Positions 11,391 through 48,252 are shown, numbered from the stretch's first letter. The stretch is DNA of 64,000 nucleotides from Sminthopsis crassicaudata (GCF_048593235.1 NC_133617.1:5709607-5773606), one strand, 5' to 3'. Numbers and translations: made by a program. The notes: generated by a model not told the origin, from the letters alone.

Positions 11391-11514
11391 GAGGACAACA
11401 TCAAAGTCTCTGTAGACCCTCACACTGTGTCTCTTGGCCAGAACCAAGGCCACATATTTTCTTGTAGGGACTGAGGAATGGAGAGGGTATTGGAACCCTT
11501 CCATTTTCTTCTCA

Positions 11515-14649: not shown

Positions 14650-14951
14650 CTGTCACCCAGATCTCTAGGACCATACTGGGTTCAGACACCTGGTATGCAG
14701 CCATCTTCCTACAGTGGACACAACTATAGTTGCCAGTATCCTGGCAGCTCACAGTGAGGAGGGAAGAATTAATTGAAGTCCCAGCTGGTCTCTGGCTCTG
14801 CAGGGACTGAGGACTACCCACGTTCTGCAGAGTGAATGTCGCTCTCCAGAGTGCTGAACAAGGGAGCTGCCTGCATTGGAGAGTCACATGCTTCCCAGGC
14901 CCCATCACTAGGAATGGTAATGCTGAGAGGGATGGCTTGGGGAGAGATAAT
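14650..14951 (-). pseudogene. D4-type Ig exon of pseudogene D (open frame but non-functional splicing)
   Basis: ORF 14600-14995 SLPKPSLSALP...CRQ...GNYSC...VLEIWVT; 302 bp versus 300 in paralogs; donor reads ATGAGG. Confidence 0.8.
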
Positions 14952-17139
14952 CTGAGAGGAAGAACATGTGGTGGGAGTGAGGACACCTGGGTCAAATGAC
15001 AATGGTTTAATCATTTGATCTGTCTGAGTCTAAGTTTGGTTGCTCAGTTGTTTTTCAATCATGTCCAGTTGTTAGGACCTCATTTAGAGTTTTCTTGGGA
15101 AAAATTGTAGAGCTTTGCCATTTTCTTCCAGAGTTCCTTTTAGAGATGAAAAAAAAATGAGACCAACTGAGTTAAATAATAAGTTCAGGCTGTACAGGTA
15201 GTAATGATACAGAGGCTAGATTTGAATTCAGAAATATGAGTTTTTCAATTTCCAAGCCCTGCTTCTATCCTTTAAGCTTTGAGTTTCATTTAAGTCCTCT
15301 CTACATGAGTTCAACTTGAATATCTCTTGAAACTTTCTAGCTGCAGGTAGCCCTAAATCTAAGGAGACTGTCACATTCAGGGGAGACCACTCAACCTATG
15401 GTCTCATACATGTGATGACTCAAAAAATAAAAGATCATGGCCCCTCCTTCCTAAACTGGGCTATCATAGATAGCCCAGAGCTTAGCCTAAAACCAGGGCT
15501 TAGGTCATAATTCAGGAGTGAGAAGGCTCAAGCTTGTTTCCAGGCTCTGTCCCTCAGTCTTGTTTTCCTCTCAGTTCTTCATTTGCTCATTGGTAATAAG
15601 AGGATTTGAGCCTTAAGAATCTCCAAGGTCCCTCTCAACGTCTAAACTCCAACTCAGCTCCACCATAAGTTTTTACCCAATATTCTAGATCACAACAGAA
15701 ATATCTTATGTCTTCCTATGCCCCTGATTCAGGATAGATCCAGGGCACAACTGCGTGTGTAGACACCATTCCCTTGTCTTTGTGAAGTCCTTTCTGGCAG
15801 AGCACAGAGGGGTTATTCTTAGCCCTATACTGTGTCCCTCATATCCATCATCCAGCACCACCAGCTCTAGGGTATCACTGGACTCTGATTCTCCACCGGA
15901 GGATGACCTGCCCTTGTAAGTATGGCTGTAGCTCCCACTGTCTCCTCAGATCTCATGGAAGGGAAGGAGAAGATCCTTCCAGAGATCTGCGGCTATAAGG
16001 GTTTCTGAGTCCCAGCCTTCCACAGAGTGAAAATCACTTTTTTAAGACAAGATAGTCTGGGTCTTGAGCACCACAGAGTGATATTAGTCTTTGGGGTTAT
16101 CACAAGGCCAGATTGGGCCCACAAAGTGTCTTTGGGGAGTTGTCCTAAGAAGAAAGGAGTTCTAGAGTTCAAAGTCTGATGTTATTTCTAGCCCCCAAGA
16201 AAGAGCTAGCAGAAATTTTCTCATGAGAATGAGCAGTCCCACCACGAGATAAGCTCATGGAGGGCTGAAGAATTAGTAAAGAAACACAACTTTTATAGAT
16301 TTTGTTACAAGAGATTACATCATAAGTAAGAGTGCCTTGGGTAAGGGGGAGGCATCTAATTGATTGCTGCTATCCGGAGAGATTGGAATAGAAAGTTTCT
16401 ATTTCCCAGAAATCACCTGATTTCTAGGAAACAGAAAATCAGGCCTTCAGGTTTTAGATAATCAAGCAGACAATGGTTAAGCTAATAGACTAAATATTGA
16501 TAAATGTCACCAGCTTAGGTTAAATAAATTTAGGCCTGTAACTAACCAAGGCTAAGTAAATACACCTGCACATATTATATTTATTCAGGTTATGATGAAA
16601 ATAAAGAAAAAGAATTCACACATTTCCGTAAGTTCTTCATCTTTCCATTCCACACACTTGTAAGGCTCTTTAGCTATAAAACCTCCAGGTTCTTTGCCTC
16701 CAGGAGGGCAAAACTGTAGGGTTACCATGATGACATTTGGCTCTAGATGGTCATTCTTCTCCCTGGGGATATCATGGAGCCATGAGGTTGAAATGCTAAG
16801 TATGGGGAGTGTTGCTGTGAGAGGAGGAAGCTAGAGACCTTACCTCTCACAACCAGTCCCTCACATTATAGCCTGGAACACAGCTGAAAAGGGAGAGGAT
16901 AGGCTGAGGGTCCTGGCCAGGTGTCTGGATCCAGTCCTGTAGGCCTGTTTGTTGCTCAGTAATTTGACTCCAAGGGTCAGCAAAAAGATTTTCTAGGCCC
17001 AGCAAAGCCATGAATGTACAGAGTCATGGGAGGAGAAGGGACATGGATAGAGGTGATCACCCTCCCCCTCCTCACTCACTCTTCTCACCTACTCCAAGGT
17101 ACCCAACCTTGGCTCTACAGTTGGGCTGCTGGATTAAGG

Positions 17140-17616
17140 CAGGATCTTTTTATATTATTATTATAGCTTTTCATTTACAAGATATATGCAGGGGTAATTT
17201 TTCAGCATTGATAATTGCAAAACCTTTTATTCCAGTTTTCCCCTTCTTTCTCCCTCCCCCTCCTCCAGATGGCAGGACATGTATATATGTCCATACAGTT
17301 ATTTTGGTAACAAAAAGAATTGGACTTGAAATAGTTCACACATTTAGCCTGTGAAGAAAATCAGAAATGCAGGTGGACAAAAACAGAGGGACTGGGAATT
17401 CTATGTAGTGGTTCACACTCATTTCCCAGAGTTCTTTCTCTGGGTGCAGCTGGTTCAGTTCATTACTGCTCTATTGGAACTGATTTGGTTTATCTCATTG
17501 TTGGAGAGGGCCACGTCCATCAGAATTGATCAGCATATAGTATTGTTGTTGAAGTGTATAATGATCTCCTGGTCCTTCTCACTTCCCTCAGCATCAGTTC
17601 ATGTAAGTCTCTCCAG
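17140..17616 (-). mobile_element. L1 3'UTR fragment
   Basis: Poly-T head plus L1 3'UTR motifs (ctcctccagatggcagg, gtccatcagaattgatc, ctccctcagcatcagttcatgtaagtctctccagg). Confidence 0.8.
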
Positions 17617-20600
17617 GTAAGGCAGGATCTTAATGCACCATAATCTGACAAATTCAGTCCTTTCTCTTAGCTTCTGGGTTTGGAAAGCCCTTTGTTCTTA
17701 ATAATTCCATGAGTGGGTGGGGGTTGAGTGTAGTTAGAGAGAAACCCAGTTTCTGAGGAAAGGCCCTACCCATTTCTCACCCTGTTGTATTGTGCCTGGT
17801 TCTTGCTCTGCGAAACCACAGCAGAGCTGGCAGAGGTGTGTATGACCCAGGATAGAGATAGCAGACACCAGTACAGGAGGACAGGGGCTCCCTCTGGAAA
17901 GATTTATGAGGAATTATACATTCTCTGGTTCACTTGGCCCCACTCATCATCTATGAGCCATTTCCTACTTCATAATGGGGGAGCCCAAAGATTTAGGGGA
18001 GACACCATTCTTGCTACCATAAGGGGATTCACATCCTGGGGATCACAGAGGTTGAACTCAAATGATCCCATTAGAGAATTTTGCTCATGAGCTTCATGCT
18101 ATGGAAAGGGGAGCTGAGGTCCACTGGAGGTCCAGGACTAGCTCATAGTTGCCCATCCATGACTGGGGTAGGACAGGTGTGTGAGCCCCCTCTCTCACGC
18201 TCCTAATCTTAGGCTTTTTCCTCCTTCAGCAGGCTGCCATCTAACACAGTTCAGATGGATAGCAGCCTGGGGCTGCTGGGATGGGTCTCAAAACTAGAGT
18301 GGGCTCATGAGAGAGGTAAAGGGCCAAGGGCCAGGTTATTGTCACTTGAGTCCATTAGGGACAGCATCCTTGGGCAGCCAGTGTCTAAGCTAAGGTTCAT
18401 GCATGTGTAGGAAAGTGAAGTTGAAGGTGGGAAAGGCATCACAGGCAGAGAAACTGTGTAAAGGAAGAATGGTGTGATATGATGGAGGTGGAGGAGGCAT
18501 CTGTGCAGGCTGAGTGTAATATAGGGAAGACAGAAGGGGACCGTGGGAGACAGAAATGGACAGGCAGAATGTTTTCATCATGGGCCATATGGAAGCAAGG
18601 AAAAATTCATCCAGATGTCATTTGTTCAGGAAAAGCTATATGTCCATTCTCCCAAAGATTGCTGGGAATCCTCTAAGGGAGTGGTAATCTGGCTGATTCA
18701 CCAGGGGACACTAAGCAGATTGGGGAAGACACCTGGATTTGGAGCTGGGGAACATTCTACTCCTGACACTAAAGAACCTTTGGACTTGATCAAGTCAGTT
18801 TACCTCTTCTCCAGGCCTCAGTTTCCCATCTCTAAAAGAGAAATTATGGTATCTATGCTCTCTAGGTCACAGCGTTATTCAGGAGAAAGACTTCAACACT
18901 CAAAATGTCAGGTTAAGAGCAATAAGTTCCCAGAGCCTTGTGAATTGTGACTGGTAAGAGGAAAAAGGTAGTAACACTTGAAAGTCTGCACCATGTATAA
19001 ATTGAATCTTTAGAGGGGGATCTGGGGGTCTTCTCTTAGGACTTGATCCTTTCCCCAAGGATAGTTTTATACCAGCTCTCTCTTACCTGTCTCCACCACC
19101 AGGGCCAAGGGGTCATTGATCTCTGACCACTGGGGTCCCTGCCCCCGAGCGGCACCTGTAGCTTTCAGCATCTCTGAAGTCATCCACGTTCTTGTGCATA
19201 AAATCGGCCAATTGCCCCAAATCGTTTCTCTCTTTCAGTCTTGATGGTTCCCTTCCTCAGTGCATTTCTGTGTGTCCTGGACTTAAAATGATTACAGTCA
19301 TTTAACATCATGATCACTACTATTCCCAGTATACTGGCAAGATGTGAAAAAAAAGTCAAAATCTATTATTATGGGTCATTTGGCCAAGAATAAGAGACAG
19401 AAATATTATTCAATGATAAAGAGAATGAGAAAAATTTATCATATTTTAGAGAAATGTCCAGAAAAGATTTGAAATAATGAAAAAAATAAGTTGAAAGTCA
19501 GAAGAGGAATGAATCACACCCTAATTTCTTTTCTGAGAGGAAAAGAGAAAGGAAAAATTAAATAATTAGATAAAAGGAAAAAGGGAAACAATAAGCAAAA
19601 TTTTAAGATCAGAACAAGAGGTACCCATTTTAAAAAAAATTATATTCTTTTTTTAAAATTTAAATCTTTATTTTTAAAACATATGCACATTTAATTTTTA
19701 ATTTTCACCCTTGCAAAAGGTTATGCTCTAAATTTTTTTTCTCCCTTCCCTCCCCTCACCCCTTCCTCTAGACCACAAGTAATCCAATATATATTGAACA
19801 TGGGCAATTCTTCAATATATACATATTTCCATTGAATTATCATGCATGTACTTACCTCACAGAAAGGTGATGAATCAAGATGGAGAAGAAGACATACACT
19901 TTGGGACACTTCAAAGTTAAAATTTTTGCATAACATATTTTTAGAAGGTCTTTCTTTTATTTTTCCTTTACAAAGAGCTGGGTTTTTGGGAAATGACAGG
20001 TGATAAGAATAAGGTAGAAAAAAAAAAAAACAAAGAGAGAGAGAATAGAAAAATATAAATGCTGTCTCTTTCATTAGACTTTTACCTTCTTGAAGACTGA
20101 GAATTTCTTTTTATTTGTAACCTCAGAACATAGCATAGTGCCTGGCATAGATGTTTGTTGACAATTTGAAAATTGATGGTGTGTTGTCACCATTGTCATA
20201 GTATATAGTTCTAGAGATAGTAGTTAATCAATGACAAGAAAAACGAGTCAATACAAGAAACCTCAAAAGGATTGCTTTTTTTTTTCAGATGATATGACTA
20301 CTTAAATTAAATGTTTTAATTAAATGTTAAATTTTTAAAAATTAACAAAATGATTTTGTTAAGTTATAAGACATAAAATCAATTCAAGAAATCTGGAGTA
20401 TTTTTGTATGTTAACAACAAAGCTCACGAGAGATACAAAAGACTTTTGTATTCATAATTCATATAGAATATATAAATTATCTGAGACTTCCTTTACCAAG
20501 ACACAAAGGGGAACTAATGGATTTCAACTCTAATTAAAGACAAACTTTAATCATTTAAATAGTGACTTTGCCTGTAATTCTACTGGGAGAGGGAACTTCC

Positions 20601-21114
20601 ATGTGAGGAAATTCCATCTATTAATGTGCTAGGCCATCTCCTGTGCAATTTAAAGTCTAAAAAATTTGACAGAGCATTGAGAGGCTAAAGGATGTGCCTA
20701 GAACTGGAGAACTAAGATGTGGTGGAGTGAGATCTGAAAGAAGGTATGGTTGGCTTCATGTCTGCCTTCTCTCATCTGCCTCCTACTGCTTATAAACTTC
20801 TCATGATTAAGCCTTTCTAACAGAGCAAAAATATAAAACTGATACTAAATATTAAAACCAATGAATTTATATGCTCTTTTCAATATAAAAATTACTAAAT
20901 ATTTCCTCATAGAATGAAGAGCATATATACATAGAAATATATAATTTATATATGTGTGTGTCTATACATTTATATATACATACATAAGTATACACACACA
21001 TATCCAGGAGTATAAGTTATGCAAAAACAACAGACATTGTAAAGAAAAGCAACTTTGAAAGTCTTAAATACTCTGAAAAATGCAGTTATCCATATCTGCA
21101 GAAGATGTCCCAAG

Positions 21115-21653
21115 NNNNNNNNNNNNNNNNNNNNNNNNNNNNNNNNNNNNNNNNNNNNNNNNNNNNNNNNNNNNNNNNNNNNNNNNNNNNNNNNNNNNNN
21201 NNNNNNNNNNNNNNNNNNNNNNNNNNNNNNNNNNNNNNNNNNNNNNNNNNNNNNNNNNNNNNNNNNNNNNNNNNNNNNNNNNNNNNNNNNNNNNNNNNNN
21301 NNNNNNNNNNNNNNNNNNNNNNNNNNNNNNNNNNNNNNNNNNNNNNNNNNNNNNNNNNNNNNNNNNNNNNNNNNNNNNNNNNNNNNNNNNNNNNNNNNNN
21401 NNNNNNNNNNNNNNNNNNNNNNNNNNNNNNNNNNNNNNNNNNNNNNNNNNNNNNNNNNNNNNNNNNNNNNNNNNNNNNNNNNNNNNNNNNNNNNNNNNNN
21501 NNNNNNNNNNNNNNNNNNNNNNNNNNNNNNNNNNNNNNNNNNNNNNNNNNNNNNNNNNNNNNNNNNNNNNNNNNNNNNNNNNNNNNNNNNNNNNNNNNNN
21601 NNNNNNNNNNNNNNNNNNNNNNNNNNNNNNNNNNNNNNNNNNNNNNNNNNNNN
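21115..21653. other. Assembly gap (N run)
   Basis: Seen directly. Confidence 1.
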
Positions 21654-21727
21654 TGAGACCAAATTTAAACTCGGGTCCTCCTGAATTCAGGGCTGGTGCT
21701 CTATCCACTGCACCACCTAGCTGCCCC
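21654..21727 (-). mobile_element. Marsupial-type tRNA-derived SINE, 5' part
   Basis: Minus strand ggggcagctaggtggtgcagtggatagagcaccagccctgaattcaggaggacccgagttt. Confidence 0.85.
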
Positions 21728-21764
21728 ATGGACTCCAAATCTTGACTGAGAAGTCCTGGTTACC

Positions 21765-21770
<6 letters not shown>

Positions 21771-21810
<40 letters not shown>
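21771..21810. repeat. (GT)20 microsatellite
   Basis: Seen directly. Confidence 0.95.
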
Positions 21811-21812
<2 letters not shown>

Positions 21813-22068
21813 ATCCAACAGCATCATAGAACTCCTGCTCAGGATTATCTCTTGGAATCAGAGTGAGACAAGCAGAAAACTGGATAAAGATGTGAGGGTC
21901 AAAATGAAAAAAAAAAAGGAATGGCTCATGTCTCAGCTCACATTCTTGGTCTCCATTAGCCTAGAACTGAGGTCAATGTCAAAGTCTCTATAGACCCTTA
22001 CATTGTATCTCTTGGCCAGACTAAGGCCATGGCTTTATATTGGTACCCTCCCTTTGTCTTCCTCTCAC

Positions 22069-22354
22069 CTCCTATTAGAAGCTCAGGGAATTACTAGGTT
22101 GTTCCCAGGGATATGTATTGGTGTCAAGCTGATGAATAGAGATATAATTTCCAGAGTTCTTGACAGTCACATGAATTAGGAAGAACTGGGCCTGACCTCT
22201 ATGCTTTCCATACAGAGTGATATTCTATCAACTGCCCCCTTGTACAGAACAATCTTAGTAGTCCATGAAGGTCCCCAGAACTGGAGGGTCACATTGGTTC
22301 CTGAGGGCACTTCTAGGCTAGGTAAGGCTGTGAAGGGAGGCTTGAGGAATACAT
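22069..22354 (-). pseudogene. Decayed D5-type Ig exon (unit E')
   Basis: cag|AT GTA TTC CTC AAG CCT..., DVFLKPPFTALPSLEVPSGTNVTLQFWG: first Cys lost, frameshift and stop; 286 bp versus 288. Confidence 0.8.
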
Positions 22355-22789
22355 CTGGAAAAACAGAGTCCAGAGATCCTCAAGATCACCTCCACAGTTG
22401 CTATGAGCATGGGTGGAGGGGGAGCAAGACTGGAGAGGTCCTGACTATCAATGCCTGTTTCCATTGACTCGTTGCCCAAAGTCTGTTTCCCTGAACAGAA
22501 GTAGATATTAAACCTCAGGTATTTTTTAGGGTTATCTAGGTATAGGAAGGCTATTTCTCCTTCCATTCTTGTCCCTTGAGCTTGGTGCAGTACCTGAGCT
22601 GGTCCATCCTTCCACTTATGCTCTTCACTTCCTAAGGATCACCCAGTTTTTGTCCCAATCTCTACTTTATGATGATTCAATGAGCCTGAAAAATATATTC
22701 TCACAGATTTTCTGGGCTACCATTAAATCCTACTTCCCATCCCTCTACTTTATGCCTTGGGTACTTGAACACACTCTCCCTTTTCACCC

Positions 22790-22995
22790 AAATCTGTGGG
22801 ACCTTATTGGGCTTAAACCCCTGGCAGAAAGCCATTTTCTTCTAGAGAAACATCTTTTATTGCCACCATCCTGGGCCATAGTCTTCATTACCATCATCTT
22901 CCTTATCATTATCACTATCATCATCATCTCCTTTTTCATAATCACCACCACCACCAACACAAAGATCATCCTCATTATTATACAATCTCAACATT
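22790..22995 (-). pseudogene. D4 3'-end remnant fused to a (CAT/CAC)n repeat (unit E')
   Basis: Flanks homologous to 12190-12560, with the same type of repeat at the same place. Confidence 0.6.
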
Positions 22996-24888
22996 AGAGC
23001 TTTTATCATGAGGAGCTTCTAGAATATGGCTAATGTCTTGAGCTTGGGCTGCATTTTTACTTCCACTTCATTTCCCTATAGATACTTTGAAAGCCTCTAG
23101 TAAAGAAACAAAAAAGAGGGCCTGAATAAAGTTTTAGTCTCATTGAATTTTGGCAGGTACGGGGGTATATAGGGACAGGGGAGAGATGGGTAGTGAGCCT
23201 TGGACAAGGGTTGCATCAGAGACTAAAAGAAGAGAGAGTCATGGAATCCAGATGGGACTAGTTGGGTCTAGTCCAGAGCCTTTCACTCCCTTATATATTT
23301 ATTCATACTGGAGGGAGGAGCAAAAACATCCTCCCATCCCTTCTTTTAATGAAGGTCTGAAAATACTCATCATCTCTTCATTTGCCACCTGATGCTATGC
23401 TAGGATTTTCTGCCACCATCATCTTGATCATGCTCAGGTTCAGGTACTCTCTGACACTGTCCTTTCCTCTTCTTCAGTGTCCTCTTGCTTATCATCTTTT
23501 CCATTAATTATAAGTCCCTAGAAGACAGAATAGTTTTTCATTTTTCTTAGTTGCCTCATTAGGGCTTATCACTTAGGATCTCAATAATTATTCATTATAT
23601 CATAGAGTATCATTTATTGATTCATCCATTCGACAAATGCTTATTATATCCACTATGTGCAAAGCATGTTAAAGCTGTTGATGCAAAAATAAAGCTGAAA
23701 AAAATCAACCCCTTCTTTCAGAGTGATTATATTATTTCCAAGAGATTGCATTGTAGATATACAGTTACAAGATGTATATAATGAGCAAATACTAAGTTAA
23801 CAAAAATTACATAGTCATTTCAAGAGAGAGAAGATGCCTGGAACTGAGGGAGAGGGTAGTAGTACCAGTCAGAGTCTGGAAAGGACTTAGCACCGGAGAA
23901 GTTTATCAAAGGAAGCGGATGATTCTAGAAACCAAAACAGATGGTAATCCAGACAGGAGGCAGGGGCACATACTTGAGGAGATACCATTTCCACAGAAAC
24001 TCAAACATTAGGTAGTCTTCCTTCCTTTTTTGCATCTAGGTTCCTGACCCGGCTGTTTAAGCTTTAGGGCCATTTTGGGACCTCTGTCCTTGGTCCTCCT
24101 CTAGTTCTTCCATTCCTTACCCAAGATGAACCCTAGGATTATAAGGACTAGTGTGGCCAGGCCAATGTGTATGAGATTCCCCACAGTATAATCCTTTAGA
24201 GCGGAATCTGAGGAAGAAAAGGTTAGAGGCAGTCATTGATTCAAGAATGGAACTTTGATTCAGGAAGTCTTTGAAATGTCCCAGATCCTTGCCTGTTCCA
24301 TCCTTCTCTCCTGTTAGCTGAGAGTTCCCCACAACTCACTTGAATTCAGCCCTAGACAGCTTGGTTTGGGACAGGATCACACTGAACAAAAATTCTGAGA
24401 TTGATTTTCTTGCTACCAACCTCCACATTCACATTAGGAAAGTTCCTCATCTTTTGTACTTTCCTTCCCTTTCTCTGATCCCGTGTACTGGGGAACCTGG
24501 CACATCATATCTCCAATTTTTATTGCTTCTCTAGAGCAAAGGTCATCCCTGAGATTGAGGGGGAGTGGAGTGCAGAAGTATACAATGAGGACATCTGGGA
24601 CAGGTGGTGAGACAGGGAAAGAAGAGATAGGTCAATACATCAAGAGATTCTGAAAGGTCAATGTAACTGGAGATGGGGCAGGCTTTGAGCTGGCAAGGAA
24701 TCAACAGGTGGTGAAAGCATGGCCTCAGAGGAGATTTTAAAAAAGTGAGTGGAATGGCTTGTGAAATGAAGGACAAAATCTGTGCGAGTGAAGTTGTTGA
24801 GGAAAAGAGGACTGAGTAGTGATGGTTGAAATTGTTGGGAATGTCAGGAGGGTGCATGCTCCTTTGGGCAAGACACTTGGGGCATGGT

Positions 24889-25010
24889 TGTTAGGTTCTT
24901 ACTAAGGGCTAATGAGATAATGAGATATTAGGTTCTTACTAAGTGCTAAGTCGGTTCTTGACAATTCTCTAGTTCCCGCCTTTACTGGAAGTTTTACTTC
25001 TATGAATTCA
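24889..25010 (+). mobile_element. 5' fragment of LTR (same family as 7643 and 56564)
   Basis: tgttaggttcttactaagggctaatgagataatgagatattaggttcttactaagtgctaag. Confidence 0.75.
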
Positions 25011-25898
25011 AGATTTGTCCCAGCCTTCCCAGAGGTGAGCGCATAGATATTTTCTTTGAGATGAATCTCCCAATACCAGAAAGGCCTTAGCCTTTCTCTG
25101 TGGCCCACTCATGGCCCTGTGTTCCAAAGTAATTCAGTAGATGAAGATATTTATAGGGTCAAGGGATTGGAAGTATTAGTTAATGTGAACAGATGATGAA
25201 TGAGTTGTGTGAAGTTCTGTCTAAGGTGATAGAAGCCATACTGAAATCCAACCAGAAAATAATCCCATCAAAATGGAGACAGAGTTGACAATTGTCAGAT
25301 GACTCTAGATATTGGAAGAGCTCACCTTGAGAATCAATTCTCTTCATACTGTGTATGTAGGCCATTTGTTTTATGCGGCAACAGCTGTTGCACAGGGTTG
25401 AAGGTGAAATATATGTCCTTGTGGAGAGGTTCATGATACCTGCTGACTGTGAATATTGACAGGTTCCTGAGCTAGGAAATAGGTTCTCCCAGCACATCCT
25501 CTGTTTACACTTCTTTCAGACTTCCCAAGGGAAACAGATACTAAACTCCTTCATTGCCGATAAAATTCTGGGAATGTTAGTGCAACCTTAATCTTCATTG
25601 CTTCCATGTTGTCATCTCTCAAAGGTGCCCACTTGTCTCCTCTGTGACTACCCTGCCCTGATTCAGGCTCTCATCATCTAGTGGCTAATTACAGCAAAAA
25701 CCATTTTGAATCTGTCCTGTTTACTCCATGACTCCCCATGCTTAGCGCTCGCTTTATTATCCTGCCAAAGCACAGGGCCCTGACTGCATCTTTACCCTAC
25801 TCAAACTCTTGTGCCTCCCTTCTACTCCCAGGATTGAAAAGTCCCTGTTTAGTATCAACAACCGCTGTTCCTTTCCTCAGTTTGGTCTCTTCTACTAT

Positions 25899-25904
25899 TT
25901 TATT
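25899..25904 (-). terminator. Candidate polyadenylation signal AATAAA for gene C read-through transcript
   Basis: tttatt on + strand, ~83 nt past the TGA at 25987; a second hexamer at 25753-25758; use is not demonstrated. Confidence 0.3.
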
Positions 25905-25986
25905 GTCCTGCTTGAACTCTCCCATTTATCCTCACTGATCTCTGGGAGGATGCTCCCAGACGATGCTTCAGTTTCTGTAATTGCTT

Positions 25987-26339
25987 TCAGTTCCTTGTAA
26001 GGGCTGATGAATAGAATGGTTCCTGGTACCTTTGTGTTGGGTTCCTCTCACCTCTTACTAGAAGCTCCAGGGTATTACTAGGGTGTTTCCAGAGACTTTC
26101 TTTGGTGCCCAGCTGATAGCTGCAGCTGTAATTGCCAGAGTGCTCGGGAGTCACATGGGTCAAGATGAATCTGCCCTGGTCTTCATGGGTTTCCATGCTG
26201 TGCAGGATTCCCTCAACCCCCTCCTTGTACAGAGCAAACCGAGGAATCCATGAGGGTCCCCGGCAAAGGAGGGTCACATTGCTCCCCGAGGCTACCTCTA
26301 GACCAGGCCAGGCTGAGAGAGAAGGCTTGGGGAGGGCAT
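25987..26339 (-). CDS. Gene C Ig D5 exon (splice form ends at 26052; read-through to TGA at 25987)
   Basis: DALPKPSLSAWPGLEVASGSNVTLLC...GNYSCSYQLG...LELLVR(GERNPTQRYQEPFYSSALTRN*). Confidence 0.85.
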
Positions 26340-29300
26340 CTGGAAACACAAAGAAAGACCCGAGATGCTCAAAATCCTCTCTGCAGTTGTGTTGAGGGGG
26401 GTATAAGGAGGGGCAAGATCATAGAGTTCTCTGAAGAATTTCCTGACCAACGATTCCATTGATTCTGACCATTCATTGCTCTGAGTTTCTTTCCCTTAAC
26501 AGGGGTAGATAGTACACTTCAGATGATCTTTGGGGCTATCTAGGAAAATACAGTTGTTTCTCCTTCCATTCTTGTCCCTTGAGCTTGGTGCAGTTCCTGA
26601 GCTGGTCCATTGTTCCAACTTTGTTTTCCACTTCCTAATTGATATCCAGTCCTTATCCCGACCTCTCCTTTCTGCTGTTAAAAGGAGCCCACATTTTCTG
26701 GGCTACCTTTCAATCTTAACTTCCATCCCTCTATTTTTTCCCTGGAGAACTTGAAGACATTCTTACCTGTCACCCAGATCTCTAGGGCATCACTGGGCTC
26801 CGACACCTGGTGTGGAGCCATTCTTTCAGAGTAGACACAAGTGTAGTTGCCAGCATCCTGGGATCTCACAGAGAGGAGGGGGAAGACAGCTGAGGTCCCA
26901 GCTGGGCTCTGGCTCTGCAAGGGCTGAGGGCTGCCCACCTTCAGCAGAGCAAATGTGGCTCTCCAGAGTGCTGACCGAGGGGGCTGCCTGCACTGGAGAG
27001 TCACATGCTTCCCAGGCTCCACCACCAGGCCTGGGTGGGCTGAGAGAGAAGGCTTGGGCAGAGATCCTGAGAGGGGAAGAATGGGGGGGGTGTGAGAGGA
27101 CGCCTGGGTCAAGTCCATGTTCTGACTCTCTGTTCCTATGTGACCATCTGAGACTTCTACCTCCTAACTCAGAACTCACTATCAACTTTTACCTAAGATC
27201 CCAGATCAAAACGGAAATATCTCATGCCTTTCAAGGTCCCTGACTCAGGACTGGCCCCAGAACAGATCAGGCCATGTAGGCCCCCTGCCCTTGGCTCTGG
27301 GGGCCCCTATTTGTGCAGAGGGCAGAGGGGTCACACTCAGCATTATTCTGGGGTCCCCACACCCCTCACCTGTCACCACCAGCTCCAGGGTCTCACTGGG
27401 CACTGATTGTCTATCAGAGCCTGTCCTGTCCTGGTAAGTACATCTGTAGCTCCCAGTGTCCTCAGGTCTGACAGAAGGGAGGGAGAAGTCAGTCCAGAGC
27501 TGTGCTGAGTTCTGGTTCTGCAAGGGCTGCCTCGTCCCAATCTTCCACAGAATATATGTCACCTCCTCAGGAGAAGCCAGCTTGGGCCTTGAGCACCAGA
27601 GAGTGATGTTGGTCCCTGGGGCTACCACAAGGCCTGGCTGGGCCCACAGGGTGGGTCTGGGTAGTTGTCCTGAGGAGAAAGGGATGCCTGAGGTCAATGT
27701 CAGATGTCATTTCTAGACCCCCTCTGCTAACCCCCTGAAAGGGGCAGCAGAAATCTTGTTTCTCATCTGATTCTCTCCCTTAGGTCCTGTCTGACTGGAG
27801 AACACCCCCATTATCCTAGGGCCTAAAGTGAGATGGCCAAGACCTTTCTTCCAGCCCTATTCCCACCATCCCTTCAGAATACCCATGATCTTATGCTGTC
27901 CCCGGAGCTTTGGGGCCTCTATGTGGGGACATGGAATGGGTACTTAGGGATTCCCAGGACTAGTCACCAAGCACAGTCAGCTCCACGGCTTGGCTGAGAA
28001 AGGATGCTCTGTGTGGGGGTGTTTTCAGGTAGTAAATACAGCTGTAGCTCCCAGTGTCCTCAGCTCCCACAGATGGAAGTGAAAATTCAGTCCCGGGCCC
28101 TGCAGGGATCTGTAGCAGTAAGGGCTCCAGTCTCTTTGCATCCAGCAGGGCAAAAGTGTAGTCCTGAGAGGGGGACCATTGGGGCATTTGGCACCAGATG
28201 GTCACTGCTTTCCCTGGAGATATCAAGGGTCCAGGTGAAGCTCCAATGTTGGGTTTGGAGAAGGTTCCTGGTCAAGGAGGAAAGAAGAAAGTTAATGATC
28301 TGATCTCCCCATCCCATGCAACCATTCCATGAAAAGAGCCAAGCAGGCAAAAAGCGTGCTTGATCAGGCCCATTTTACAGTCCTGTAGGCCTGGGGTACT
28401 TGGTCCATGGGTTCCTTGGTCACCTTGAGAAAGATGTTCTGGGCTTGAGAAGTCTGTGAATCTATAAAACAATGGAGAAGATGGAACAAGGGGCGGAGCA
28501 GGTCCCCCTTTCACACCTGTCCCCCTTCTTACTCCCTTCAAGGGGCCCAACTTTGGTCCTACAGCCAGGCCAGCAGGACCAAGAAAGGACTCTAATACAA
28601 CCGCACAGACAAATTCAGACTTTTCTCTTAGGTTTTAAGGTTTGAAAATCTCTGGCTTCTCTTCCAAATAACCCCATAACTGTGGGATACACAGAATTTC
28701 TAGATTCCCAGGCTCCAATTTCCCCACACTGTGGCATGTCCTTGGCCTATCACTCATTGTCAATACTGCAGTGAAACCAGAGCAGGAGCTGCCAGAGGAG
28801 AATGGAGACTCCCTCTGAGTCTGCTTTCCCTGCCCTCATTCATCATCAGTCATTTCCTGCTCAATGAAGGGGGAGCCCTAAAGATTTAAGGAAGGGATCA
28901 TTCTTGCTACCTGAAGACAGTCATTTTCACAAGGATCACAGAGTTTTTAGCTCAAAAAACCCCATTAGACCATCCGGTCCATTAGAACATAAGCTTCATG
29001 TCATGAAGAGGGAAACTGATCTCTAGAAGGCCAGGACTTTCCCATAGTCACCCCACCAACATCGAGGGGGACAGGTGTGTGAATGTTATTTCACAGCCAT
29101 CAAATCAAGCTCCTCCTCCCTTCATCGGGCTATCTTCTGTCATAGGCCAGATGGACAGTAGCTTGGGGTGCAGAGAAGGACCCAGGGCTAGAGTGGACCC
29201 ATGAGAATGGTAAAGCCGGCATGCTGGGAAGGACCAGGACATTGCCACTTGATGGCAGCTGGGGCAGCATCCTGGGGCCGCCAGCATCTGAGCTGGGCTT

Positions 29301-30823
29301 GAAGCATGTATAAGAAAGTGATGAAGGCGAGAAGGGCATTACAGGCAGGGAAAACAGTGTGAGCAAAGGCAGAGAGGTGGGACATGATGGAGATTGGGGG
29401 AAGCATCTGTCCGTGCTGATGGGAATGTAAGGAGGACAGCAGGGAACACTGGGAGACAGAACGGGGCTGGTGGGATATTGGCAGTGTGAGCCCAAAGAAG
29501 AAAGGAAAAGTTCATCTAGGTAAAGTTTCCTCTGTAAAAGCTGGGTGCCCCTGCTCCCAAAGGTGGCTGTGTATGTCTGAGGGAGGAGCATCCTGGCTTG
29601 AATGGCTGAGTCACCAAAGGACCCTGAGCAGATGAGGGGAGATCTGTAGATTTGCTGCTAGGAGACATGGCTCACAATCCTGTCCCTGACACTTAAGATC
29701 CCGCTGACCTGCTTGAGTCCCCTTACCTTCTCTCCAGGCCTCAGTTTCCCCATCTCTAAAAGAAAAACCATCACACATGAGCTCTCCTCCTGGCAGAATT
29801 ATTGAGGGGAAAGATTTCTAAACTTTATAATCTTAACCTCTGAGTGGGTGAGGCAGGTGTTCTCGGAGCCTAGGGAGGTGGTTGGTGAGGGGAGACAGTT
29901 ATTAAAGACCAATAGTTTTCCCTTTTAATCATTGACTTTCTAGAGACGGATCAGGGGCTCCTCTCCCAGGACTTGCCTTTCCCCAAAGGATGGTTTGAGC
30001 ACACCTCACCTGTCATCACCATCAGGGCCAGGGGGTCACTGAGCTCTGACCACAAGGGCCCCTGCCCAGAGCGGCACCTGTAGCTCCTGGCATCTGTCCA
30101 GTCATTCACACTCCTGAGCACAAAGTCTGTCTGTGACCATGAATCATTTCTCTCCTCTATGAGCTCTCCATCCTTCCAGAGCTGGAATTTGTCACTCCCC
30201 AGTCGTCCCTGGCACCTGAGGGTCACATCTGCTCCCTTGGGGACCACGGGACTTGGCAGAGCCCAGAGGGTGGGTCTTGGGAGGATTTCTGAAGAGGAAA
30301 CAAATTTGATTTTTAGGGATTCCTCTGGAGCCCGTGTTTCTCCTCCACATCCTGAAGTCCCTCCTTTCATCACCCCTTCCATTCCTTGCAACGGCACCTG
30401 TTTTCCTCCCTGCTTAACCCAGGAGTGGATTTCTGGGTTGATCTGAGACAAAGACTGAAAGGCGAACATTGTGCTTTTGGGGGCAGGACTCACCCATCTG
30501 TGCCCTGACCTCCCAGTGCAGACACAGCCCTGTAAGAGAAGACCAGGTTACAGATGGCTCCCCTCCAGCCCACTCTGACTTCTTCCCCAGCCCTTGCCAA
30601 CGACCCTGATTCTCTAATTCTGCTTTGATCAAAATATGAAGGGGGATCCCTGTGAGCAGAGACTGGGTCCTGCTCTGCCTCAATGATTCTGACTCCTCTT
30701 TAAGTTTCCTCCCTGTCCTTCTGACTCAGTCAGCTAAAGGCCTTGGCAAAATAGTCTCTCTTTTGCCAGGGTTAACCTTGAAGACTCACCTGTGGAGAGC
30801 AGCAGAGTGAGGGTGGCGTCCAT
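25987..30823 (-). CDS. Gene C: LRC-type Ig-superfamily protein, signal peptide + 5 Ig domains, no visible TM (candidate secreted, ~533 aa)
   Basis: Exons 30790-30823, 30494-30529, 30010-30288, 27968-28267, 27370-27669, 26767-27066, 26052(25987)-26339; all GT-AG, phase 1 and open; the 3' end is uncertain. Confidence 0.75.
26767..27066 (-). CDS. Gene C Ig D4 exon
   Basis: 300 bp, cag|GA...G|gtaag; SLPKPSLSAHPGLVVEPGKHVTLQC...GNYTC. Confidence 0.9.
27370..27669 (-). CDS. Gene C Ig D3 exon
   Basis: 300 bp; QLPRPTLWAQPGLVVAPGTNITLWC...GSYRC. Confidence 0.9.
27968..28267 (-). CDS. Gene C Ig D2 exon
   Basis: 300 bp; TFSKPNIGASPGPLISPGKAVTIWC...GSYSC. Confidence 0.9.
30010..30288 (-). CDS. Gene C Ig D1 exon
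   Basis: 279 bp; ILPRPTLWALPSPVVPKGADVTLRC...FQLWKDGEL...RSYRC. Confidence 0.9.
30494..30529 (-). CDS. Gene C 36-bp signal-peptide mini-exon
   Basis: cag|GG CTG TGT CTG CAC TGG GAG GTC AGG GCA CAG ATG G|gtgag; the 36-bp second exon is a hallmark of LRC genes. Confidence 0.88.
30790..30823 (-). CDS. Gene C leader exon (MDATLTLLLST G)
   Basis: Kozak cccaccATGG, 34 bp, G|gtgag. Confidence 0.88.
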
Positions 30824-30940
30824 GGTGGGCCTTCAGCTTTGTCCTAACCTCTACTGTGGAGAGTACCGGAGGCTGCAGGACTGGAGGCTAGTCCAGGATG
30901 TTGTGGGCAGCCCTTCTACCTCAGGCCTCCTAAACCCTGG

Positions 30941-33798: not shown

Positions 33799-34775
33799 CT
33801 AAACCTAGTGTTTTTGAGGGAGCAGAATCTTCATAAATCACTATTGTTAGACCATCCTCACATTGTATCTATATATTCTTTTCTTATTTCCCTCCAGATA
33901 TACCCATCTTCACCAGCAATCCAAAGATTAAGGGAAATGCTGCTCAGAGGTGGCTTTTCCCTTGAAATTATATTCAGAAAGCTAGAAACTAGGATAGCAT
34001 TATGGTTCCCAGGGAAGTATGAGAGAAAGTCTCTCATGCCAAGCCACAATCTTTTTTCTACAGACCTGGAATTGAGGAAAGGGTTAAAATATCAGTAGTG
34101 TCTGTTCCCATGTTTCTTGGCTAGAGCAAAGGTCTTGGTTTCTTTTCCTCGTAGGGGATGAGTAAAAAGGTGCCATTGGCACCTTCCAGTGAGTATTATG
34201 GGCTTCTGCTTCTTACTTCTAACTGCAGGGGTTCATTGCCTTTTTTTCCAGAGATTTCCCTTGGTGAGTGGCAGCCAAAGTCCTTGAGGATCACCTTTGT
34301 CAGAATAGCTGTTCTCCATCTTGAGTGATATCCATGTTCGGAAGAATTTTTTCATCTCCTTCCTTTTAGAGAATAAAGCAATTATTTCTTGAGGGTCCCC
34401 ATCACAGCAGGGTCATATTGGCCCTGAGATCAATTCTGGGCCAAGTTAGGCTGGGAGGAAAAGCTTGGGAAATGTATATGGAAATCCAAATAGAAGTCAG
34501 AGATCCTCAAGTTCAGCTTCACAGTCATAATGTGGGTGGGTGGGTGAAGGTAGCAAGAGTTTTGAGATCTCTGAAAGACACCATCACTTCCTTTGTCATT
34601 TTGGTCATTTTTTGACCAAAATCTCCAAACAGAAAAGGCATGATTGTTGAACCTCTGATGTTCTATGGGCCTATCTAGAAACAGGGTCCTTCTGTGACCT
34701 TTGAGCTTAGAGCAGTACTTGAGCCGGTCCATCCTTCCACCTTTGTTCAAATCTTCCTTAAAAACCCTCAGCCTT

Positions 34776-36120
34776 ATGGACCTACATTTAATACCATACA
34801 GCAAGATGAGATCAAAATGGGTCCATGATTTAGGCATAAAGAATGAGATTATGAATAAATTAGAGGAACTCTTAGACTTGTGGAGGAGGAAGGAATTTGT
34901 GACCAAAGAAGAACTAGAGATCATTATTGATCACAAAATAGAAAATTTTGATTATATCAAATTAAAAAGCCTTTCTACAAACAAAACTAATGTAAACAAG
35001 ATTAAAATGGAAGCAATAAAGTGGGAAAACATTTTTATAGTTAAAGGTTCTGATAAAGGCCTCATTTCCAAAATATATAGAGAATTGACTCTAATTCAGA
35101 AGAAATCAAGCCATTCTCCAGTTGATAAATGGTCAAAGGATATGAACAGACAATTTTCAGATGATGAAATTGAAACTATTTCTACTCATATAATCACTAT
35201 TGATCAGAGAAATGCAAATTAGGACAACTCTGAGATAACACTACCCACCTGTCAATTGGCTAAGATGACAGGAACAAATAATAATGAATGTTGGAGGGAA
35301 TGTGGGAAAACTGGGACACTGATGTATTGTTGGTGGAATTGTGAAAGAATCCAGCCATTCTGGAGAGCAATTTCAAATTTTGCCCCCCAAATTATCAAAC
35401 TGTGCCCTTTGATCCAGTGGTGTTACTACTGGGCTTATATTTCAAACAGATACTAAAGAAGGGAAAGGGACCTGTATGTGCCAAAATGTTTGTGGCAACC
35501 CTTTTTGTAGTGGCTAGAAACTGGAAAATGAATGGATGTCCATCAATTGGAGAGTGGTGGGGTAAATTGTGCTATATGAATGTTATAGAATATTATTGTT
35601 CTATAAGAAATGACCAGCAGCAATAATACAGAGAGGCTTGGAGAGATTTGGAGAGACTTACATAAACTGATGCTGAGTGAAATGAGCAGAACCAGGAGAT
35701 CATTAGACACTTCAACAACAATACTGTATGAGGATATACTCTGATGGAAGTGGAAATCTTTGACAAAGAGAAGATCTAATTCCATTCCAATTGATCAATG
35801 ATGAACAGGATCAGCTACACCCAGAGAAGGAACACTGGGAAATGACTGTGGACTACTTACATTTTTGCTTTTCTTCCCAGTTTATTTTTACTTTCTGAAT
35901 CCAATTCTTCTTGTACAATAAGAGAAATATATAGTTCTGCTCACATATAGTGTATCTGGGATATACTATAACATATTTAACATGCATAAGACTGCCTGCC
36001 ATCTAGGGAAGGGGTGGAGGGAGGGAAGGAAAAAGTCAGAACAGAAGTGAGTGCAAGGGATAATGTTGTAAAAAATTACCCATGCATATGTTCTATCAAT
36101 ATAAAGTTATAATTTAAAAA
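34776..36120 (+). mobile_element. 5'-truncated L1 (ORF2 C-terminus + 3'UTR + A-rich tail)
   Basis: ORF2-like ENFDYIKLKS...DKGLISKIYREL...WSKDMNRQF, CWRECGKTGTL; 15-bp TSD aaaaccctcagcctt (34761-34775) / aataccctcagtctt (36121-36135). Confidence 0.92.
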
Positions 36121-36829
36121 AATACCCTCAGTCTTGTTCCAATTTTTATCACACATGGTCAGACCAGCCCAGAATAATGTAATATCTCTACCTTCTTAGC
36201 CTGACTTTCAAATTTGAAATACAAATTTCTATTTTATTCCTTAAGTACACAGACATACTCACCTATTATCTAGGTGACCTCACTGGGCTCAAATACCTGG
36301 TGGAGAGTCATTCTTCTATAATAGAAACAGCTATAGTTGCCATCCTGGACCCTCACAGAGAGCAGTGAGAAGTCAACCGAGGTCTCAACTGGGATCTGGC
36401 TCTGCAGGAGCTGAGGGTTGCCCAGCTTCAGCAGAATAAATGTCACTCTCCAGAGTGCTGATTAGAGAACTTTCTGCACTGAAGAGTTACATGCTTTCCA
36501 AGTTCCACCAACAGGCCTGGAAGGTCCAAGAAGGAAGGCTTGGGCAGAAAACCTGTTCTGGGCCATACTTCCAACTTTGTTCAAACCTATCTTAGAAATC
36601 CTCAGTCTTTTCCCAATTTCTATCTCATAATGATGAAATCAATCTAGAACAATGTATCTTAAAGGCATTCCTGGCCTGCTTCACAAGCTTGATTCCCATA
36701 TTTGTCATCTAGATCTCTAAGATTTCACTTGTTTCAAAGATTTGAAAGGAATAGCAAGATTTGAACCTTTCTGGAGTCCTACCAGATTCCTTTTATGACA
36801 CAGATATGGTGGTTGGTAGCTAAATCAGG

Positions 36830-40430: not shown

Positions 40431-40728
40431 NAATGAAATGCATTCTCTGCTGGTGCTTCATAATTTCAATATTGTTTTTTTTTAAACTTTGAGGTCCAGA
40501 TTCTCTTCTCCTCCTTCCTCCTAAACCACCTTTAGACTGGTGTACTCTGTCCAAGTTTATATCCCAGTGGATGTTCCTTATAGCTACCATGGCTCAGTGA
40601 TGGCAATGGGAGAAAGCACATTAGAGAACACATGAAATGAGGATCAGGGAGAGGAGAAGAGATGGAAGAGGAAAAGTAAAGAATTCCTTTGTGAAAAGTG
40701 CCCAAATCCTCAGTCTAAAAATACAGTG

Positions 40729-40842
40729 TCATAGAACATAGGTTCTATGGGTATCTCCTTGGCATCCTTTTTTTTTCTTATTCAAGGTTCTTAAGTTCAA
40801 CTGAGTGTACGTCACTTCCTGTGGCTCTTCAGCCATGGCGAC
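40729..40842 (-). CDS. Gene B terminal ITIM exon (VAMAEEPQEVTYTQLNLRTLNKKKKGCQGDTHRTYVL*)
   Basis: ccttcag|GTC; VTYTQL fits the V/IxYxxL ITIM consensus. Confidence 0.85.
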   Translation of the reverse strand, partial: VAMAEEPQEVTYTQLNLRTLNKKKKGCQGDTHRTYVL

Positions 40843-42046
40843 CTGAAGGAGAAATATAAGAGGGAGGGAACAGTGAGTGACTTCACAGTGGCAGTTCTTA
40901 ATCTAGTTCTGTTGTGAAAGCTTTGAAGACTCGTTTGGGAAAGCTATAGATACCTTCTCAGTCTCACACTGTACTAAAAAGAATTATGAAGGAAATAAAT
41001 GATATTGAAGTATAGTTATGGAAATGTTATTTACATATTCTCACTAATTTAAGAGATACTCATTTTAAAGGCATTATACTGGAAGAGAAGAAATAAGAAA
41101 GATCTTTTCCAACCAAACCCTGTTAAAAGTTAGGGTCAAGTTTGAAAGTTTTTCGAGGTAGAAGACAGGATGGAATTAACTTACGAATAGTTGTCCTGGT
41201 CTGTCTTCGGCAGCTTCTGAATCTGAGGTGGAGGGAAGATTATATCATTCACAAGCTCCAAGAACAAAGATTTCCTTCTACTATTCCTCCCCCATCCCAG
41301 GATCCTGCTCTTTTCCTGACCAGATAACTTACATGGGTTTTCCTCTCTGGGTCCATCAGCATGATGAGGCAGGCAGGTACTCCAAGGAAAGCAAGAGCAA
41401 CAGCTACAGTAGGGAGAAAGGGAAGAAATAACCTAAGGAGATGGAATTCACTCAGGGAGGTTCTGTCAGCTTCTTCTCCTCACCAGAATCTCTTTCCAGT
41501 TCAGAGAGTTCAGGTTACATGGAAAAGAAGGAACCAAGGACAATGGGAAGAAGAGTGGAGTCTCCTTACCTCTGAAGGCTGTATCCTCTCAAAGACCCTG
41601 GGAGAGAGACATGGGCACAAAGAAATAAAGTCAGGGAAGACTTCAAAAAAGGAAATGGAGGTCTAGTCCTTATTATTTCTGTTTCATCCTCTCTTCCCCA
41701 AACTCACCCACAGGGATGGATCCATGGCAGAGGAATGCAAACAGGAGAAGGCAGAGGAGGAGGAGAAGAAAGGAAACACAGCTGAGGATGATGATCAAGT
41801 TGTTACTGGGATCTGAACATGGATTGGGGGCAGAGAAGAATCTTCATAAATAACTGTGCAAAGGAACGCTTACCTTTCCTATATAATTATTACTAAGTTT
41901 TTCTCTTATTCCCTCTACAACCTCCCATCACCACTAGCATTCAACAGTTTGGTACAAATCCTATTCAGAGAGGGTTTATCTCTTAGAATCAAAGTGAGTA
42001 AACAGAAACCAGAATAAAGATGCATGTTTGTATGTGTGTGTGTGTG

Positions 42047-48218: not shown

Positions 48219-48252
48219 CCCCACAGTTTCCACTCTTATACTGATGAAAGGG
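48219..48252 (-). promoter_or_regulatory. Conserved proximal promoter block of gene B
   Basis: Minus strand ctttcatcagtataagagtggaaactgtggg. Confidence 0.5.

Follow-up and report, generated by a model that had tools for sequence, protein, structure and literature searches.

Gene C, on the minus strand of a window of 64,000 nucleotides from the fat-tailed dunnart Sminthopsis crassicaudata, is a genuine five-domain immune-receptor gene and, to judge from its sequence, it is not anchorless, as an in-frame membrane-anchor (TM) exon of activating type is found in the locus. Its predicted structure is that of a chimera, with an ectodomain like that of the neighbouring inhibitory gene A and an activating-type 3' end, in which the signalling arginine and most of the tail appear to be lost; the gene is possibly signalling-dead or decaying. 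That C is the activating member of an ordinary pair of activating and inhibitory leukocyte receptor complex (LRC) receptors, with A as its partner, is about an even call.

The gene corresponds to the NCBI protein XP_074121866.1 ('IGSF1-like', Sminthopsis crassicaudata), and its top database relatives are marsupial IGSF1-like proteins. All five Ig domains match Pfam Ig_2, the best PDB matches of the domains are to LILR, PIR-B and OSCAR, and with these LRC-type Ig domains C falls within the 'MAIR' expansion of marsupial IGSF1-like LRC genes (group B, PMC6557307). Leader exon 1 (30823-30790, ATG at 30823) has the same sequence as the start of the NCBI model P0202, and leader exon 2 (30529-30494, 36 nt, phase 1 to 1) is identical to that of A at 36 of 36 positions. 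The leader is followed by the Ig exons D1 (30288-30010; Ig_2 E 3e-9; 95.7% amino-acid identity to A), D2 (28267-27968; Ig_2; 82% amino-acid identity to A), D3 (27669-27370; Ig_2 E 1e-11), D4 (27066-26767; best PDB match LILRA6/LILRB1 D4, E 1e-31) and D5 (26339-26052; 100% identical to residues 399-493 of P0202), each of them intact. All seven exons are open and in phase 1, with GT/AG sites and two cysteines per Ig domain, in agreement with the intact leader and five intact Ig exons of the earlier note; neither stops nor frameshifts nor broken splice sites were found in them, 14 of 14 splice sites and 10 of 10 Ig cysteines being intact. Leader exon 2 is used in relatives such as P0018, and is omitted from the NCBI model of C.

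Concerning the relation to gene A (54319-61376), both genes are on the same strand at a distance of 29 kb, gene B being in the interval, and they share about 91% of their nucleotides overall (~89-93%). Exon nucleotide identity amounts to 87-97% and the domains are 82-96% identical in amino acids, which bears out the description of C as a twin of an inhibitory receptor, A possessing an uncharged TM exon at 53981-53890 and, near 53055-52945, an ITIM exon with the motif VTYTQL. The promoter region of C is 95% identical to that of A. The tree of D5 groups C and A as sisters (94/87 support) within a clade of devil and Antechinus inhibitory genes, whereas D5 of an Antechinus gene with an anchor of the NxxR type lies outside the clade. 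That C might be an assembly haplotig of A was rejected, the two being 9% diverged and in tandem with gene B between them, with different 3' flanks.

The abrupt end of the homology to the post-D5 intron of A at about 25983, noted earlier, was confirmed by blastn: 25983-27147 matches 54319-55501 at 91% identity, and below 25983 (equivalent to 54319 in A) identity falls to 51%. This point is the junction between the A-like ectodomain block and an activating-type 3' flank. Homologues of the inhibitory TM or ITIM tail exons of A, B or X were absent from 19300-26060 in searches by blastn (word 7) and tblastx. The earlier note had concluded that no TM or tail exon was visible between the break and the next promoter, but its search was restricted to homology with the tail of A and thus missed an NxxR-type TM exon of 87 nt at 24207-24121 (minus strand; 24207 to 24101 including the stop), which is in phase 1 and in frame with D5, 1.85 kb downstream of it. 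Its acceptor comprises a CTAAC branch point, a pyrimidine tract and AG. The exon encodes a stalk, a DYT motif, N-L-I-H and an 18-residue hydrophobic span (Kyte-Doolittle 19-residue maximum 2.58), after which the six residues GKEWKN are followed by a TAG stop (24103-24101). The first AATAAA past this stop is situated at 23613-23618, about 95 nt short of the end of an X1 contig (23519-24925).

The TM exon is most similar to that of Antechinus XP_051845621.1 (P0022; blastp E 1e-15, 29 of 34 residues identical, 85%), followed by devil P0219 (KAM9034782.1; E 1e-10), and matches more than 30 other NxxR anchors at E 1e-8 to 1e-4, among them eutherian IGSF1, LILRA, OSCAR and GPVI-type anchors. The NxxR class is defined by a DYT motif, an Asn, an Arg and an acidic residue at the C-terminal end of the span, and the Arg is called essential for association with FcR-gamma (PMC6557307). 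All of these features except the Arg are found in C: its exon reads K-D-Y-T-V-G-N-L-I-H, with the Asn three residues before the charged position, and the span is followed by G-K-E-W (cf. A-E-A-W and A-I-E-W in relatives), whereas the codon at 24169-24167 is CAC, encoding His; for the X1 contig over this codon no difference is listed. Two single-base changes distinguish C, namely that of the FcR-gamma-pairing Arg to His and that of a conserved Trp, six residues past the span, to TAG. The latter cuts off the tail; translated past the stop, C continues to agree with Antechinus at 19 of 22 residues.

Since the D5 tree places C beside A in the inhibitory clade, the activating-type 3' end points to a chimeric origin. 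C would then be the activating-lineage partner of inhibitory A in the leukocyte receptor complex, which is expanded in marsupials. Promoter, leader and the five Ig exons of C were copied or converted from the A lineage inside the dunnart lineage. The A-like block stops 69 nt into the post-D5 intron (25983), and what lies beyond is the 3' part of a gene of another type. By default, such a gene would yield a five-Ig receptor anchored in the membrane, with the same ligand as A and with poor or no coupling to FcR-gamma, and C may for this reason be a surface partner that signals poorly or resembles a decoy, or else an activating receptor whose decay is at an early stage.

A stronger version of the latter, in which C is transcribed but has lost its activating function (Arg to His, truncated tail), drifts and yields aberrant transcripts only, is a minor though real possibility. 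Of the changes assigned to the lineage of C, 28 are nonsynonymous and 13 synonymous, as opposed to 18 and 23 along that of A (Fisher p = 0.045); omega in C is about 0.7 and, with 41 polarised changes only, not different from neutral (p = 0.28), whereas gene A is strongly constrained (p = 1e-5). Faster evolution of one member is the usual asymmetry in such receptor pairs, and in this respect favours the paired reading. The neutral-like pattern and the two damaging changes in the TM exon agree with decay, as do the pseudogene state of the neighbouring units D (11389-19238) and E' and the NCBI model of C, which skips leader exon 2, takes up half of D2 and recruits cryptic exons, one in intron 3 and three at the 3' end. 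Moreover, activating members of paired families are established to be short-lived and derived from inhibitory ones (cited in PMC6557307). Decay is, however, difficult to reconcile with the complete set of splice sites and Ig cysteines, with the conserved promoter region, and with the absence of stops and frameshifts from the exons (1537 nt): the introns of C and A are 9.6% diverged and, over 3068 aligned nt, differ by 22 frameshifting indels, and at these rates 5.5 frameshifts would be expected in the exons, where none exists (P ~0.004). Repeated gene conversion from A is a process by which exon intactness of C could be mimicked.

The earlier note had interpreted C as a soluble decoy, a reading whose premise, the lack of a TM exon, is false. 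The features on which it drew are nevertheless present. Read-through of the D5 donor, intact as stated and with the sequence GTGAGA, adds 21 codons and a TGA (26051-25987, TGA at 25989-25987; open reading frame 25987-26349), and the two AATAAA signals at 25904-25899 and 25758-25753 were found in a block (25702-25899) that matches 12873-13077 at 74%. The read-through sequence is homologous to the intron of A, in which the same frame stops after 10 codons, and the 69-nt stretch is 84% identical between the genes, thus less conserved than either exons or introns; the 21-residue peptide would simply be translated intron. No conserved coding 3' end with a poly(A) site was found in C downstream of D5, and none of the database proteins of 64-203 residues contains D5 together with the read-through tail.

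A second open read-through exists at the D3 donor, from which 41 codons and a stop extend into intron 5 (27369-27245; open reading frame 27245-27697), a candidate three-Ig secreted isoform. With A, the beginning of intron 5 shares 97.3% of its nucleotides over 150 nt; the first 18 residues of the read-through recur unchanged in the devil model P0021, and X1 covers the stretch at a depth of about 88 with C-type letters present.

Contigs of four runs were examined (X1, X5 and X10 among them), whose RNA nature is a guess. C-type letters are seen in the RNA-like X1 contigs; over D3, where depth is 100-280, no A-type differences are listed, such that the contigs there are of C type. X5 and X10 contain the splice joint D4|D5 (26767/26339), and where contigs cover D5 and the 3' portion of D4, their letters are those of A. 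The sole C-specific contig over the D5 donor, X1 25456-26081 (626 nt with a single mismatch; letters of C at 26073, 26076 and 26080), is unspliced. The joint from D5 to 24207 is absent from the contigs of the four runs, and the TM-exon acceptor is crossed by X1 and X5 contigs collinear with the genome at a depth of 3-5. In the NCBI model of C, D5 is instead spliced to an out-of-frame cryptic exon within unit E' (22490-22390), without a TM, and an X1 contig (22221-22583) crosses this exon unspliced. Against a TM exon the model weighs little, since the NCBI model of A skips the TM exon of A and that of C skips leader exon 2.

It is on such data that a mainly secreted C would have to be based, whether by D5 read-through, by the TM-less 3' exons of the NCBI model, or by intron-5 retention in a three-Ig form. 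The unspliced contig 25456-26081 reaches a depth of 13, compared to 2.4-5.5 in intron 6 and 3-5 further downstream, the tail of the NCBI model has no hydrophobic span (Kyte-Doolittle maximum 0.54), and the start of intron 5 is open in frame, covered and common to the devil model; marsupial LRC genes in which a TM exon was not detected are possibly secreted (PMC6557307). We nevertheless consider a mainly secreted C unlikely, as the D5 donor is a good one, the intact TM exon is in frame, the read-through peptide is unconserved and unmatched among the proteins searched, and a depth of 13 is less than one tenth of exon depth. In addition, the same contig runs past both AATAAA to 25456, 280 nt beyond the second, and thus shows the use of neither. 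Minor secreted forms of C may result from unspliced read-through, alongside an anchored default product.

A last alternative, that D5 is spliced to an inhibitory-type TM exon belonging to unit E' and hidden in the N gap at 21115-21653, which would make C a second inhibitory receptor, is highly improbable. Unit E' (23363-21842) consists of decayed D4/D5-like exons, with a frameshift near 22200, and of an inhibitory-type post-D5 intron leading into the gap; as the earlier note had it, this intron homology heads toward the gap, with 21842-22036 matching A 54131-54323, after which comes the (CA)n repeat that is also present in B, and in A the TM exon is situated about 150 nt beyond the equivalent point. 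Yet E' is frameshifted, a SINE fragment occupies 21654-21715 directly adjoining the gap, an ITIM or tail block is absent left of the gap, as had also been stated, a closer intact TM exon intervenes, and such a joint occurs in no contig.

The organization of C and A is most similar to that of paired LRC receptors (LILRA/LILRB, PIR-A/PIR-B, KIR2DS/KIR2DL), which are neighbouring genes with near-identical ectodomains, one partner possessing an uncharged TM and an ITIM (here A, with VTYTQL) and the other a short tail behind a TM exon of charged type. As in C and A, similarity between such partners ends in the intron before the TM exon, and the activating-type member, like C, evolves faster. Despite this general similarity, C has a His in place of the charged Arg and a six-residue tail in its candidate TM exon, and differs from LILR and KIR proper in that its Ig domains, five in number, belong to the IGSF1-like group of marsupials.

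Soluble members of the LRC, i.e., LILRA3, A1BG and opossum DM43/DM64, are multi-Ig proteins without an anchor. The NCBI model of C is likewise TM-less, whereas the C locus has a TM exon, and its would-be secreted tail appears to be unconserved intron. A1BG consists of five Ig domains (PMC6557307). Orthology of C to A1BG or DM64 is not supported by the present tree, which comprises neither of them and places C with A in a dasyurid clade of inhibitory IGSF1-like genes; C would be a recent copy of a membrane receptor rather than an orthologue of A1BG, the comparison with A1BG and DM43/DM64 being one of descriptions.

With the NxxR TM exon (Guselnikov and Taranin 2019, PMC6557307), C shares the DYT motif, the Asn three residues before the charged position and the hydrophobic span, and differs in the His for Arg and in a stop codon for the conserved Trp. 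At the cytoplasmic edge the Glu-Trp of EWKKW in IGSF1 and EWKNW in Antechinus recurs in C as EWKN-stop. Losses of the Arg are also found in dunnart TARM1-like P0254 (NLFH), in a bat IGSF1 (Gln) and in P0069/P0074 (NxxH). The TM exons closest to that of C, those of Antechinus flavipes XP_051845621.1 and Sarcophilus KAM9034782.1 (85% identity), keep the Arg; that of Antechinus retains the Trp as well, with at least 29 residues of tail. In the Antechinus protein, D4-D5 is joined directly to the TM exon, as is proposed for C. The D5 domains of both relatives are only 73% identical to that of C and lie outside the A/C clade, such that they are related to C via the 3' end only.

A possible parallel is FCGR3B, which arose recently by duplication of FCGR3A, a receptor coupled to FcR-gamma. 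Its tail is cut short by an early stop, and its anchoring and signalling are altered by the exchange of a residue close to the membrane span. C would resemble it as a recent duplicate with an early stop and with an exchanged residue by its span, whereas GPI anchoring by a defined Ser is a feature of FCGR3B.

All receptor genes of the window are situated on the minus strand, as found by self-comparison and by tblastn with the domains of gene C. From right to left, the window contains the tail of a gene starting outside it (62788-64000), the inhibitory gene A (54319-61376, with tail exons at 52658-54179), its tandem relative gene B (42118-49139, tail 40619-42020), Ig debris (34318-36547), gene C (25983-30880), the decayed D4/D5-like exons of unit E' (21842-23363), an N gap (21115-21653), pseudogene unit D (11389-19238), and the upstream region of a further gene (1-1129). 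Stops and frameshifts mark both the Ig debris and unit D as decayed five-Ig copies. After unit D come a copy (12873-13077) of block X, the block that bears the AATAAA signals at C, and an E-type unit; C has the same two neighbours, pointing to duplication of a larger segment.

The seven 5' exons of gene C are as the earlier note described them, i.e., open and in phase 1, with consensus splice sites and two cysteines per domain. All five domains match Pfam Ig_2, and the best solved relatives of D4 are LILRA6, LILRB1, LILRB3, PIR-B, and OSCAR. The alignment of C with A spans 32079 to 25983 (identity 87-97% in exons and 88-97% in introns); below 25983 identity is at chance level, such that the abrupt end of homology is confirmed. 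C as a haplotig of A is ruled out by the divergence of 9%, the different flanks, and the tandem layout, and E' as additional Ig exons (D6/D7) of C is ruled out as well, since E' is frameshifted and degenerate. At the end of D5 in A (54388-54414), the 9-nt motif aagtaagag is present in three copies, whereas C has one; the extra copies add R-E-V-R-E-V in A, and every copy contains a potential GT donor.

Both AATAAA signals exist as claimed, as does the open read-through of the D5 donor (21 codons, TGA at 25989-25987), and an inhibitory-type tail is indeed absent downstream of C: no TM/ITIM homologue of A, B or X occurs in 19300-26060, where blastn (word size 7) and tblastx matched nothing beyond the homologous E' intron, a (CA)n repeat in common, and part of a SINE. 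The statement that no TM exon is visible, on which the view of C as an anchorless soluble decoy was built, proved false, however. Downstream of D5, an 87-nt exon is found at 24207-24121 (minus strand), with CTAAC, a pyrimidine tract, and AG on its acceptor side and in frame with D5 via one carried-over base. It is the only copy of this exon in the window and encodes a short stalk, K-D-Y-T-V-G-N-L-I-H, and a hydrophobic span of 18 residues (Kyte-Doolittle 19-residue maximum 2.58, versus -1.44 for the D5 read-through tail); the frame continues with G-K-E-W-K-N and ends in TAG at 24103-24101. With this exon in place, it is highly improbable that the TM exon of C is concealed in the N gap at 21115-21653.

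In comparisons with full-length D5 relatives (an all-library HMMER set and a second set), the exon matches the C-terminus of Antechinus flavipes XP_051845621.1 at 29 of 34 residues (E 1e-15), directly preceded there by a D5-like domain, as well as the Tasmanian devil protein KAM9034782.1 (E 1e-10) and more than 30 further N-x-x-R-class anchors of eutherian IGSF1, LILRA, OSCAR, and GPVI-like proteins. A homologue search with the TM/tail region of XP_051845621.1 returned no protein besides XP_051845621.1 itself. The NxxR class, the membrane anchor of FcR-gamma-coupled LRC receptors, comprises 45 of 74 opossum TM exons; its hallmarks are a DYT motif, a conserved Asn, an Arg on which association with FcR-gamma depends, and, at the cytoplasmic end, an acidic residue (Guselnikov and Taranin, PMC6557307). 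All of these features are present in the exon of C except for the Arg, which is replaced by His (CAC at 24169-24167). At the cytoplasmic edge, Antechinus and IGSF1 read E-W-K-N/K-W, whereas C reads E-W-K-N-stop; among the 22 codons past this TAG, 19 still match Antechinus, so the stop is probably recent. An X1 contig (X1, X5, and X10 being runs of aligned, presumably RNA-derived contigs) covers the His and TAG sites with no listed difference from the window. If used, the exon would anchor the five Ig domains at the cell surface, with His in place of Arg and only six tail residues, and the receptor would probably signal poorly. Outside the window, the dunnart TARM1-like protein XP_074163430.1 has N-L-F-H in its anchor where its devil orthologues have N-L-F-R, such that the species has two NxxR-type anchors in which Arg has become His.

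Concerning expression, the RNA evidence consists of assembled contigs only. Two runs, X5 and X10, show the D4|D5 splice joint (26767/26339, GT..AG). Every diagnostic site has the A-type base in the X10 contig and in most of the X1 coverage over D5 and the 3' part of D4, and these sequences therefore derive from A or an A-like allele. C-type bases stand at 26335 and 26337 in a spliced X5 contig of 140 nt. In X1, the contigs that cover D3 and the 5' half of D4 (within 26767-27669; depth 100-280) are without listed A-type differences, and at the start of intron 5 the C-type depth is about 31-55 (27292 and 27253). Gene C is probably transcribed. The mosaic in X1, C-type in D3 and 5' D4 and A-type in 3' D4 and D5, may stem from alleles, another paralogue, or bubble-popping by the assembler. 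A short repeat at 24886-25009, with further copies at 7643-7760, 56561-56676, and 57255-57375, reaches extreme depths (about 58,000 at most) in each of the four runs; expression of a SINE or LTR fragment is the probable explanation.

A mainly secreted product of C is in our view unlikely. It would accord with an X1 contig (25456-26081, 1 mismatch in 626, depth 13) that is unspliced across the D5 donor and extends past both AATAAA signals; some C molecules read through this donor. The acceptor of the TM exon is crossed genome-collinearly by an X1 contig (23519-24925, depth 5.3) and an X5 contig (24072-24251, depth 4), and the aligned contigs show no downstream joint from D5 to the TM exon, to the cryptic exon of the NCBI model, or elsewhere. 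D5 with its read-through tail has no match among database proteins of 64-203 residues. A different secreted form is a candidate further upstream: retention of intron 5 would give a conserved three-Ig isoform. The first 150 nt past the D3 donor (27220-27369, minus strand) are 97.3% identical between C and A, versus 87% for the remaining intron 5, and stay in frame for about 40 codons (the counterpart in A lies just below 56112); the devil model UniRef A0A7N4PH33 shares the first 18 residues, and X1 covers this part at about 88, with both A-type and C-type bases. Furthermore, an X10 contig with a loose end at 27669-27672 joins the 3' end of D1 straight to D3, pointing to a D2-skipping isoform of A or C.

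The NCBI model of C (Sminthopsis crassicaudata XP_074121866.1, 579 residues) is identical to the window's translations of D1, D3, D4, and D5; it omits leader exon 2, leaving a leader of 11 residues, adds a cryptic exon (28477-28379), and enters D2 via an internal acceptor. Past D5 it continues with 22490-22390, out of frame within pseudogene E' and crossed genome-collinearly by an X1 contig (22221-22583), then with 3648-3523 and 120-43, resulting in an 86-residue tail without a hydrophobic span. In the model of A (XP_074158598.1), D5 is followed by a 30-nt exon (53694-53665) and the ITIM exon (region 52947-54424), whereas the clear uncharged TM exon at 53981-53890 is omitted, which points to a TM-less isoform or else to an error in the model. 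As even the obvious TM exon of A is left out, such models carry little weight on anchoring, and the 3' ends of both are doubtful.

Concerning selection, 9.6% of intron sites differ between C and A, and the 3068 nt of aligned intron contain 22 frameshifting indels, from which about 5.5 frameshifts are predicted in the 1537 nt of C's exons; none is observed (P about 0.004). Pairwise dN/dS is 0.47. With changes polarised by B as outgroup, the C lineage shows 28 nonsynonymous and 13 synonymous changes (omega about 0.7), not different from neutral (p = 0.28), and the A lineage 18 and 23 (omega about 0.25, p = 1e-5); the two lineages differ in Fisher's test (p = 0.045). Open exons combined with fast change would fit an activating partner whose selection is relaxed or diversifying, or else a gene in early decay that conversion from A has buffered. 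Early pseudogenisation, with which the near-neutral rate and the stop would agree and the lack of frameshifts would not, is a possible but rather doubtful reading.

That C is the partner of A from the activating lineage, its TM exon having been overlooked, is the best-supported reading, and we give it about an even chance. In a maximum-likelihood tree of D5, C is sister to A (support 94/87), both nested in a clade (85/97) whose devil and Antechinus members have an uncharged TM and an ITIM, and the Antechinus NxxR gene forms a long branch outside it. The ectodomain block is therefore of inhibitory-lineage origin, copied or converted after the dunnart lineage had split off. The TM exon is that of an older activating lineage common to Antechinus and devil, and position 25983 marks the junction of the inhibitory-lineage ectodomain with the activating-lineage 3' part. 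More tentatively, and with little probability as yet, C may be an ex-activating receptor disarmed by the Arg-to-His change and the early stop, i.e., a signalling-null surface decoy, possibly lipid-anchored or shed, that competes with A for the same ligand. Given the second NxxH anchor in the TARM1-like protein, the marsupial LRC may on this reading have lost FcR-gamma coupling repeatedly and under selection.

In LRC clusters, the end of homology to an inhibitory twin is no safe ground for concluding secretion: a TM exon of the activating type has an unrelated sequence and lies at a greater distance. C is of a known kind, belonging to the paired receptors of the expanded marsupial LRC, and the public annotation includes it already. 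What deserves attention is its disarmed anchor, along with how doubtful the public models are. With His for Arg and no tail to speak of, the anchor is a naturally occurring variant of the element most conserved in the LRC, and would make a simple test case for roles besides FcR-gamma binding. C also offers a clean, recent example of a paired receptor formed via recombination within the intron preceding the TM exon. Such a junction is the standard anatomy of paired receptors, and the break of C at 25983 is alike.
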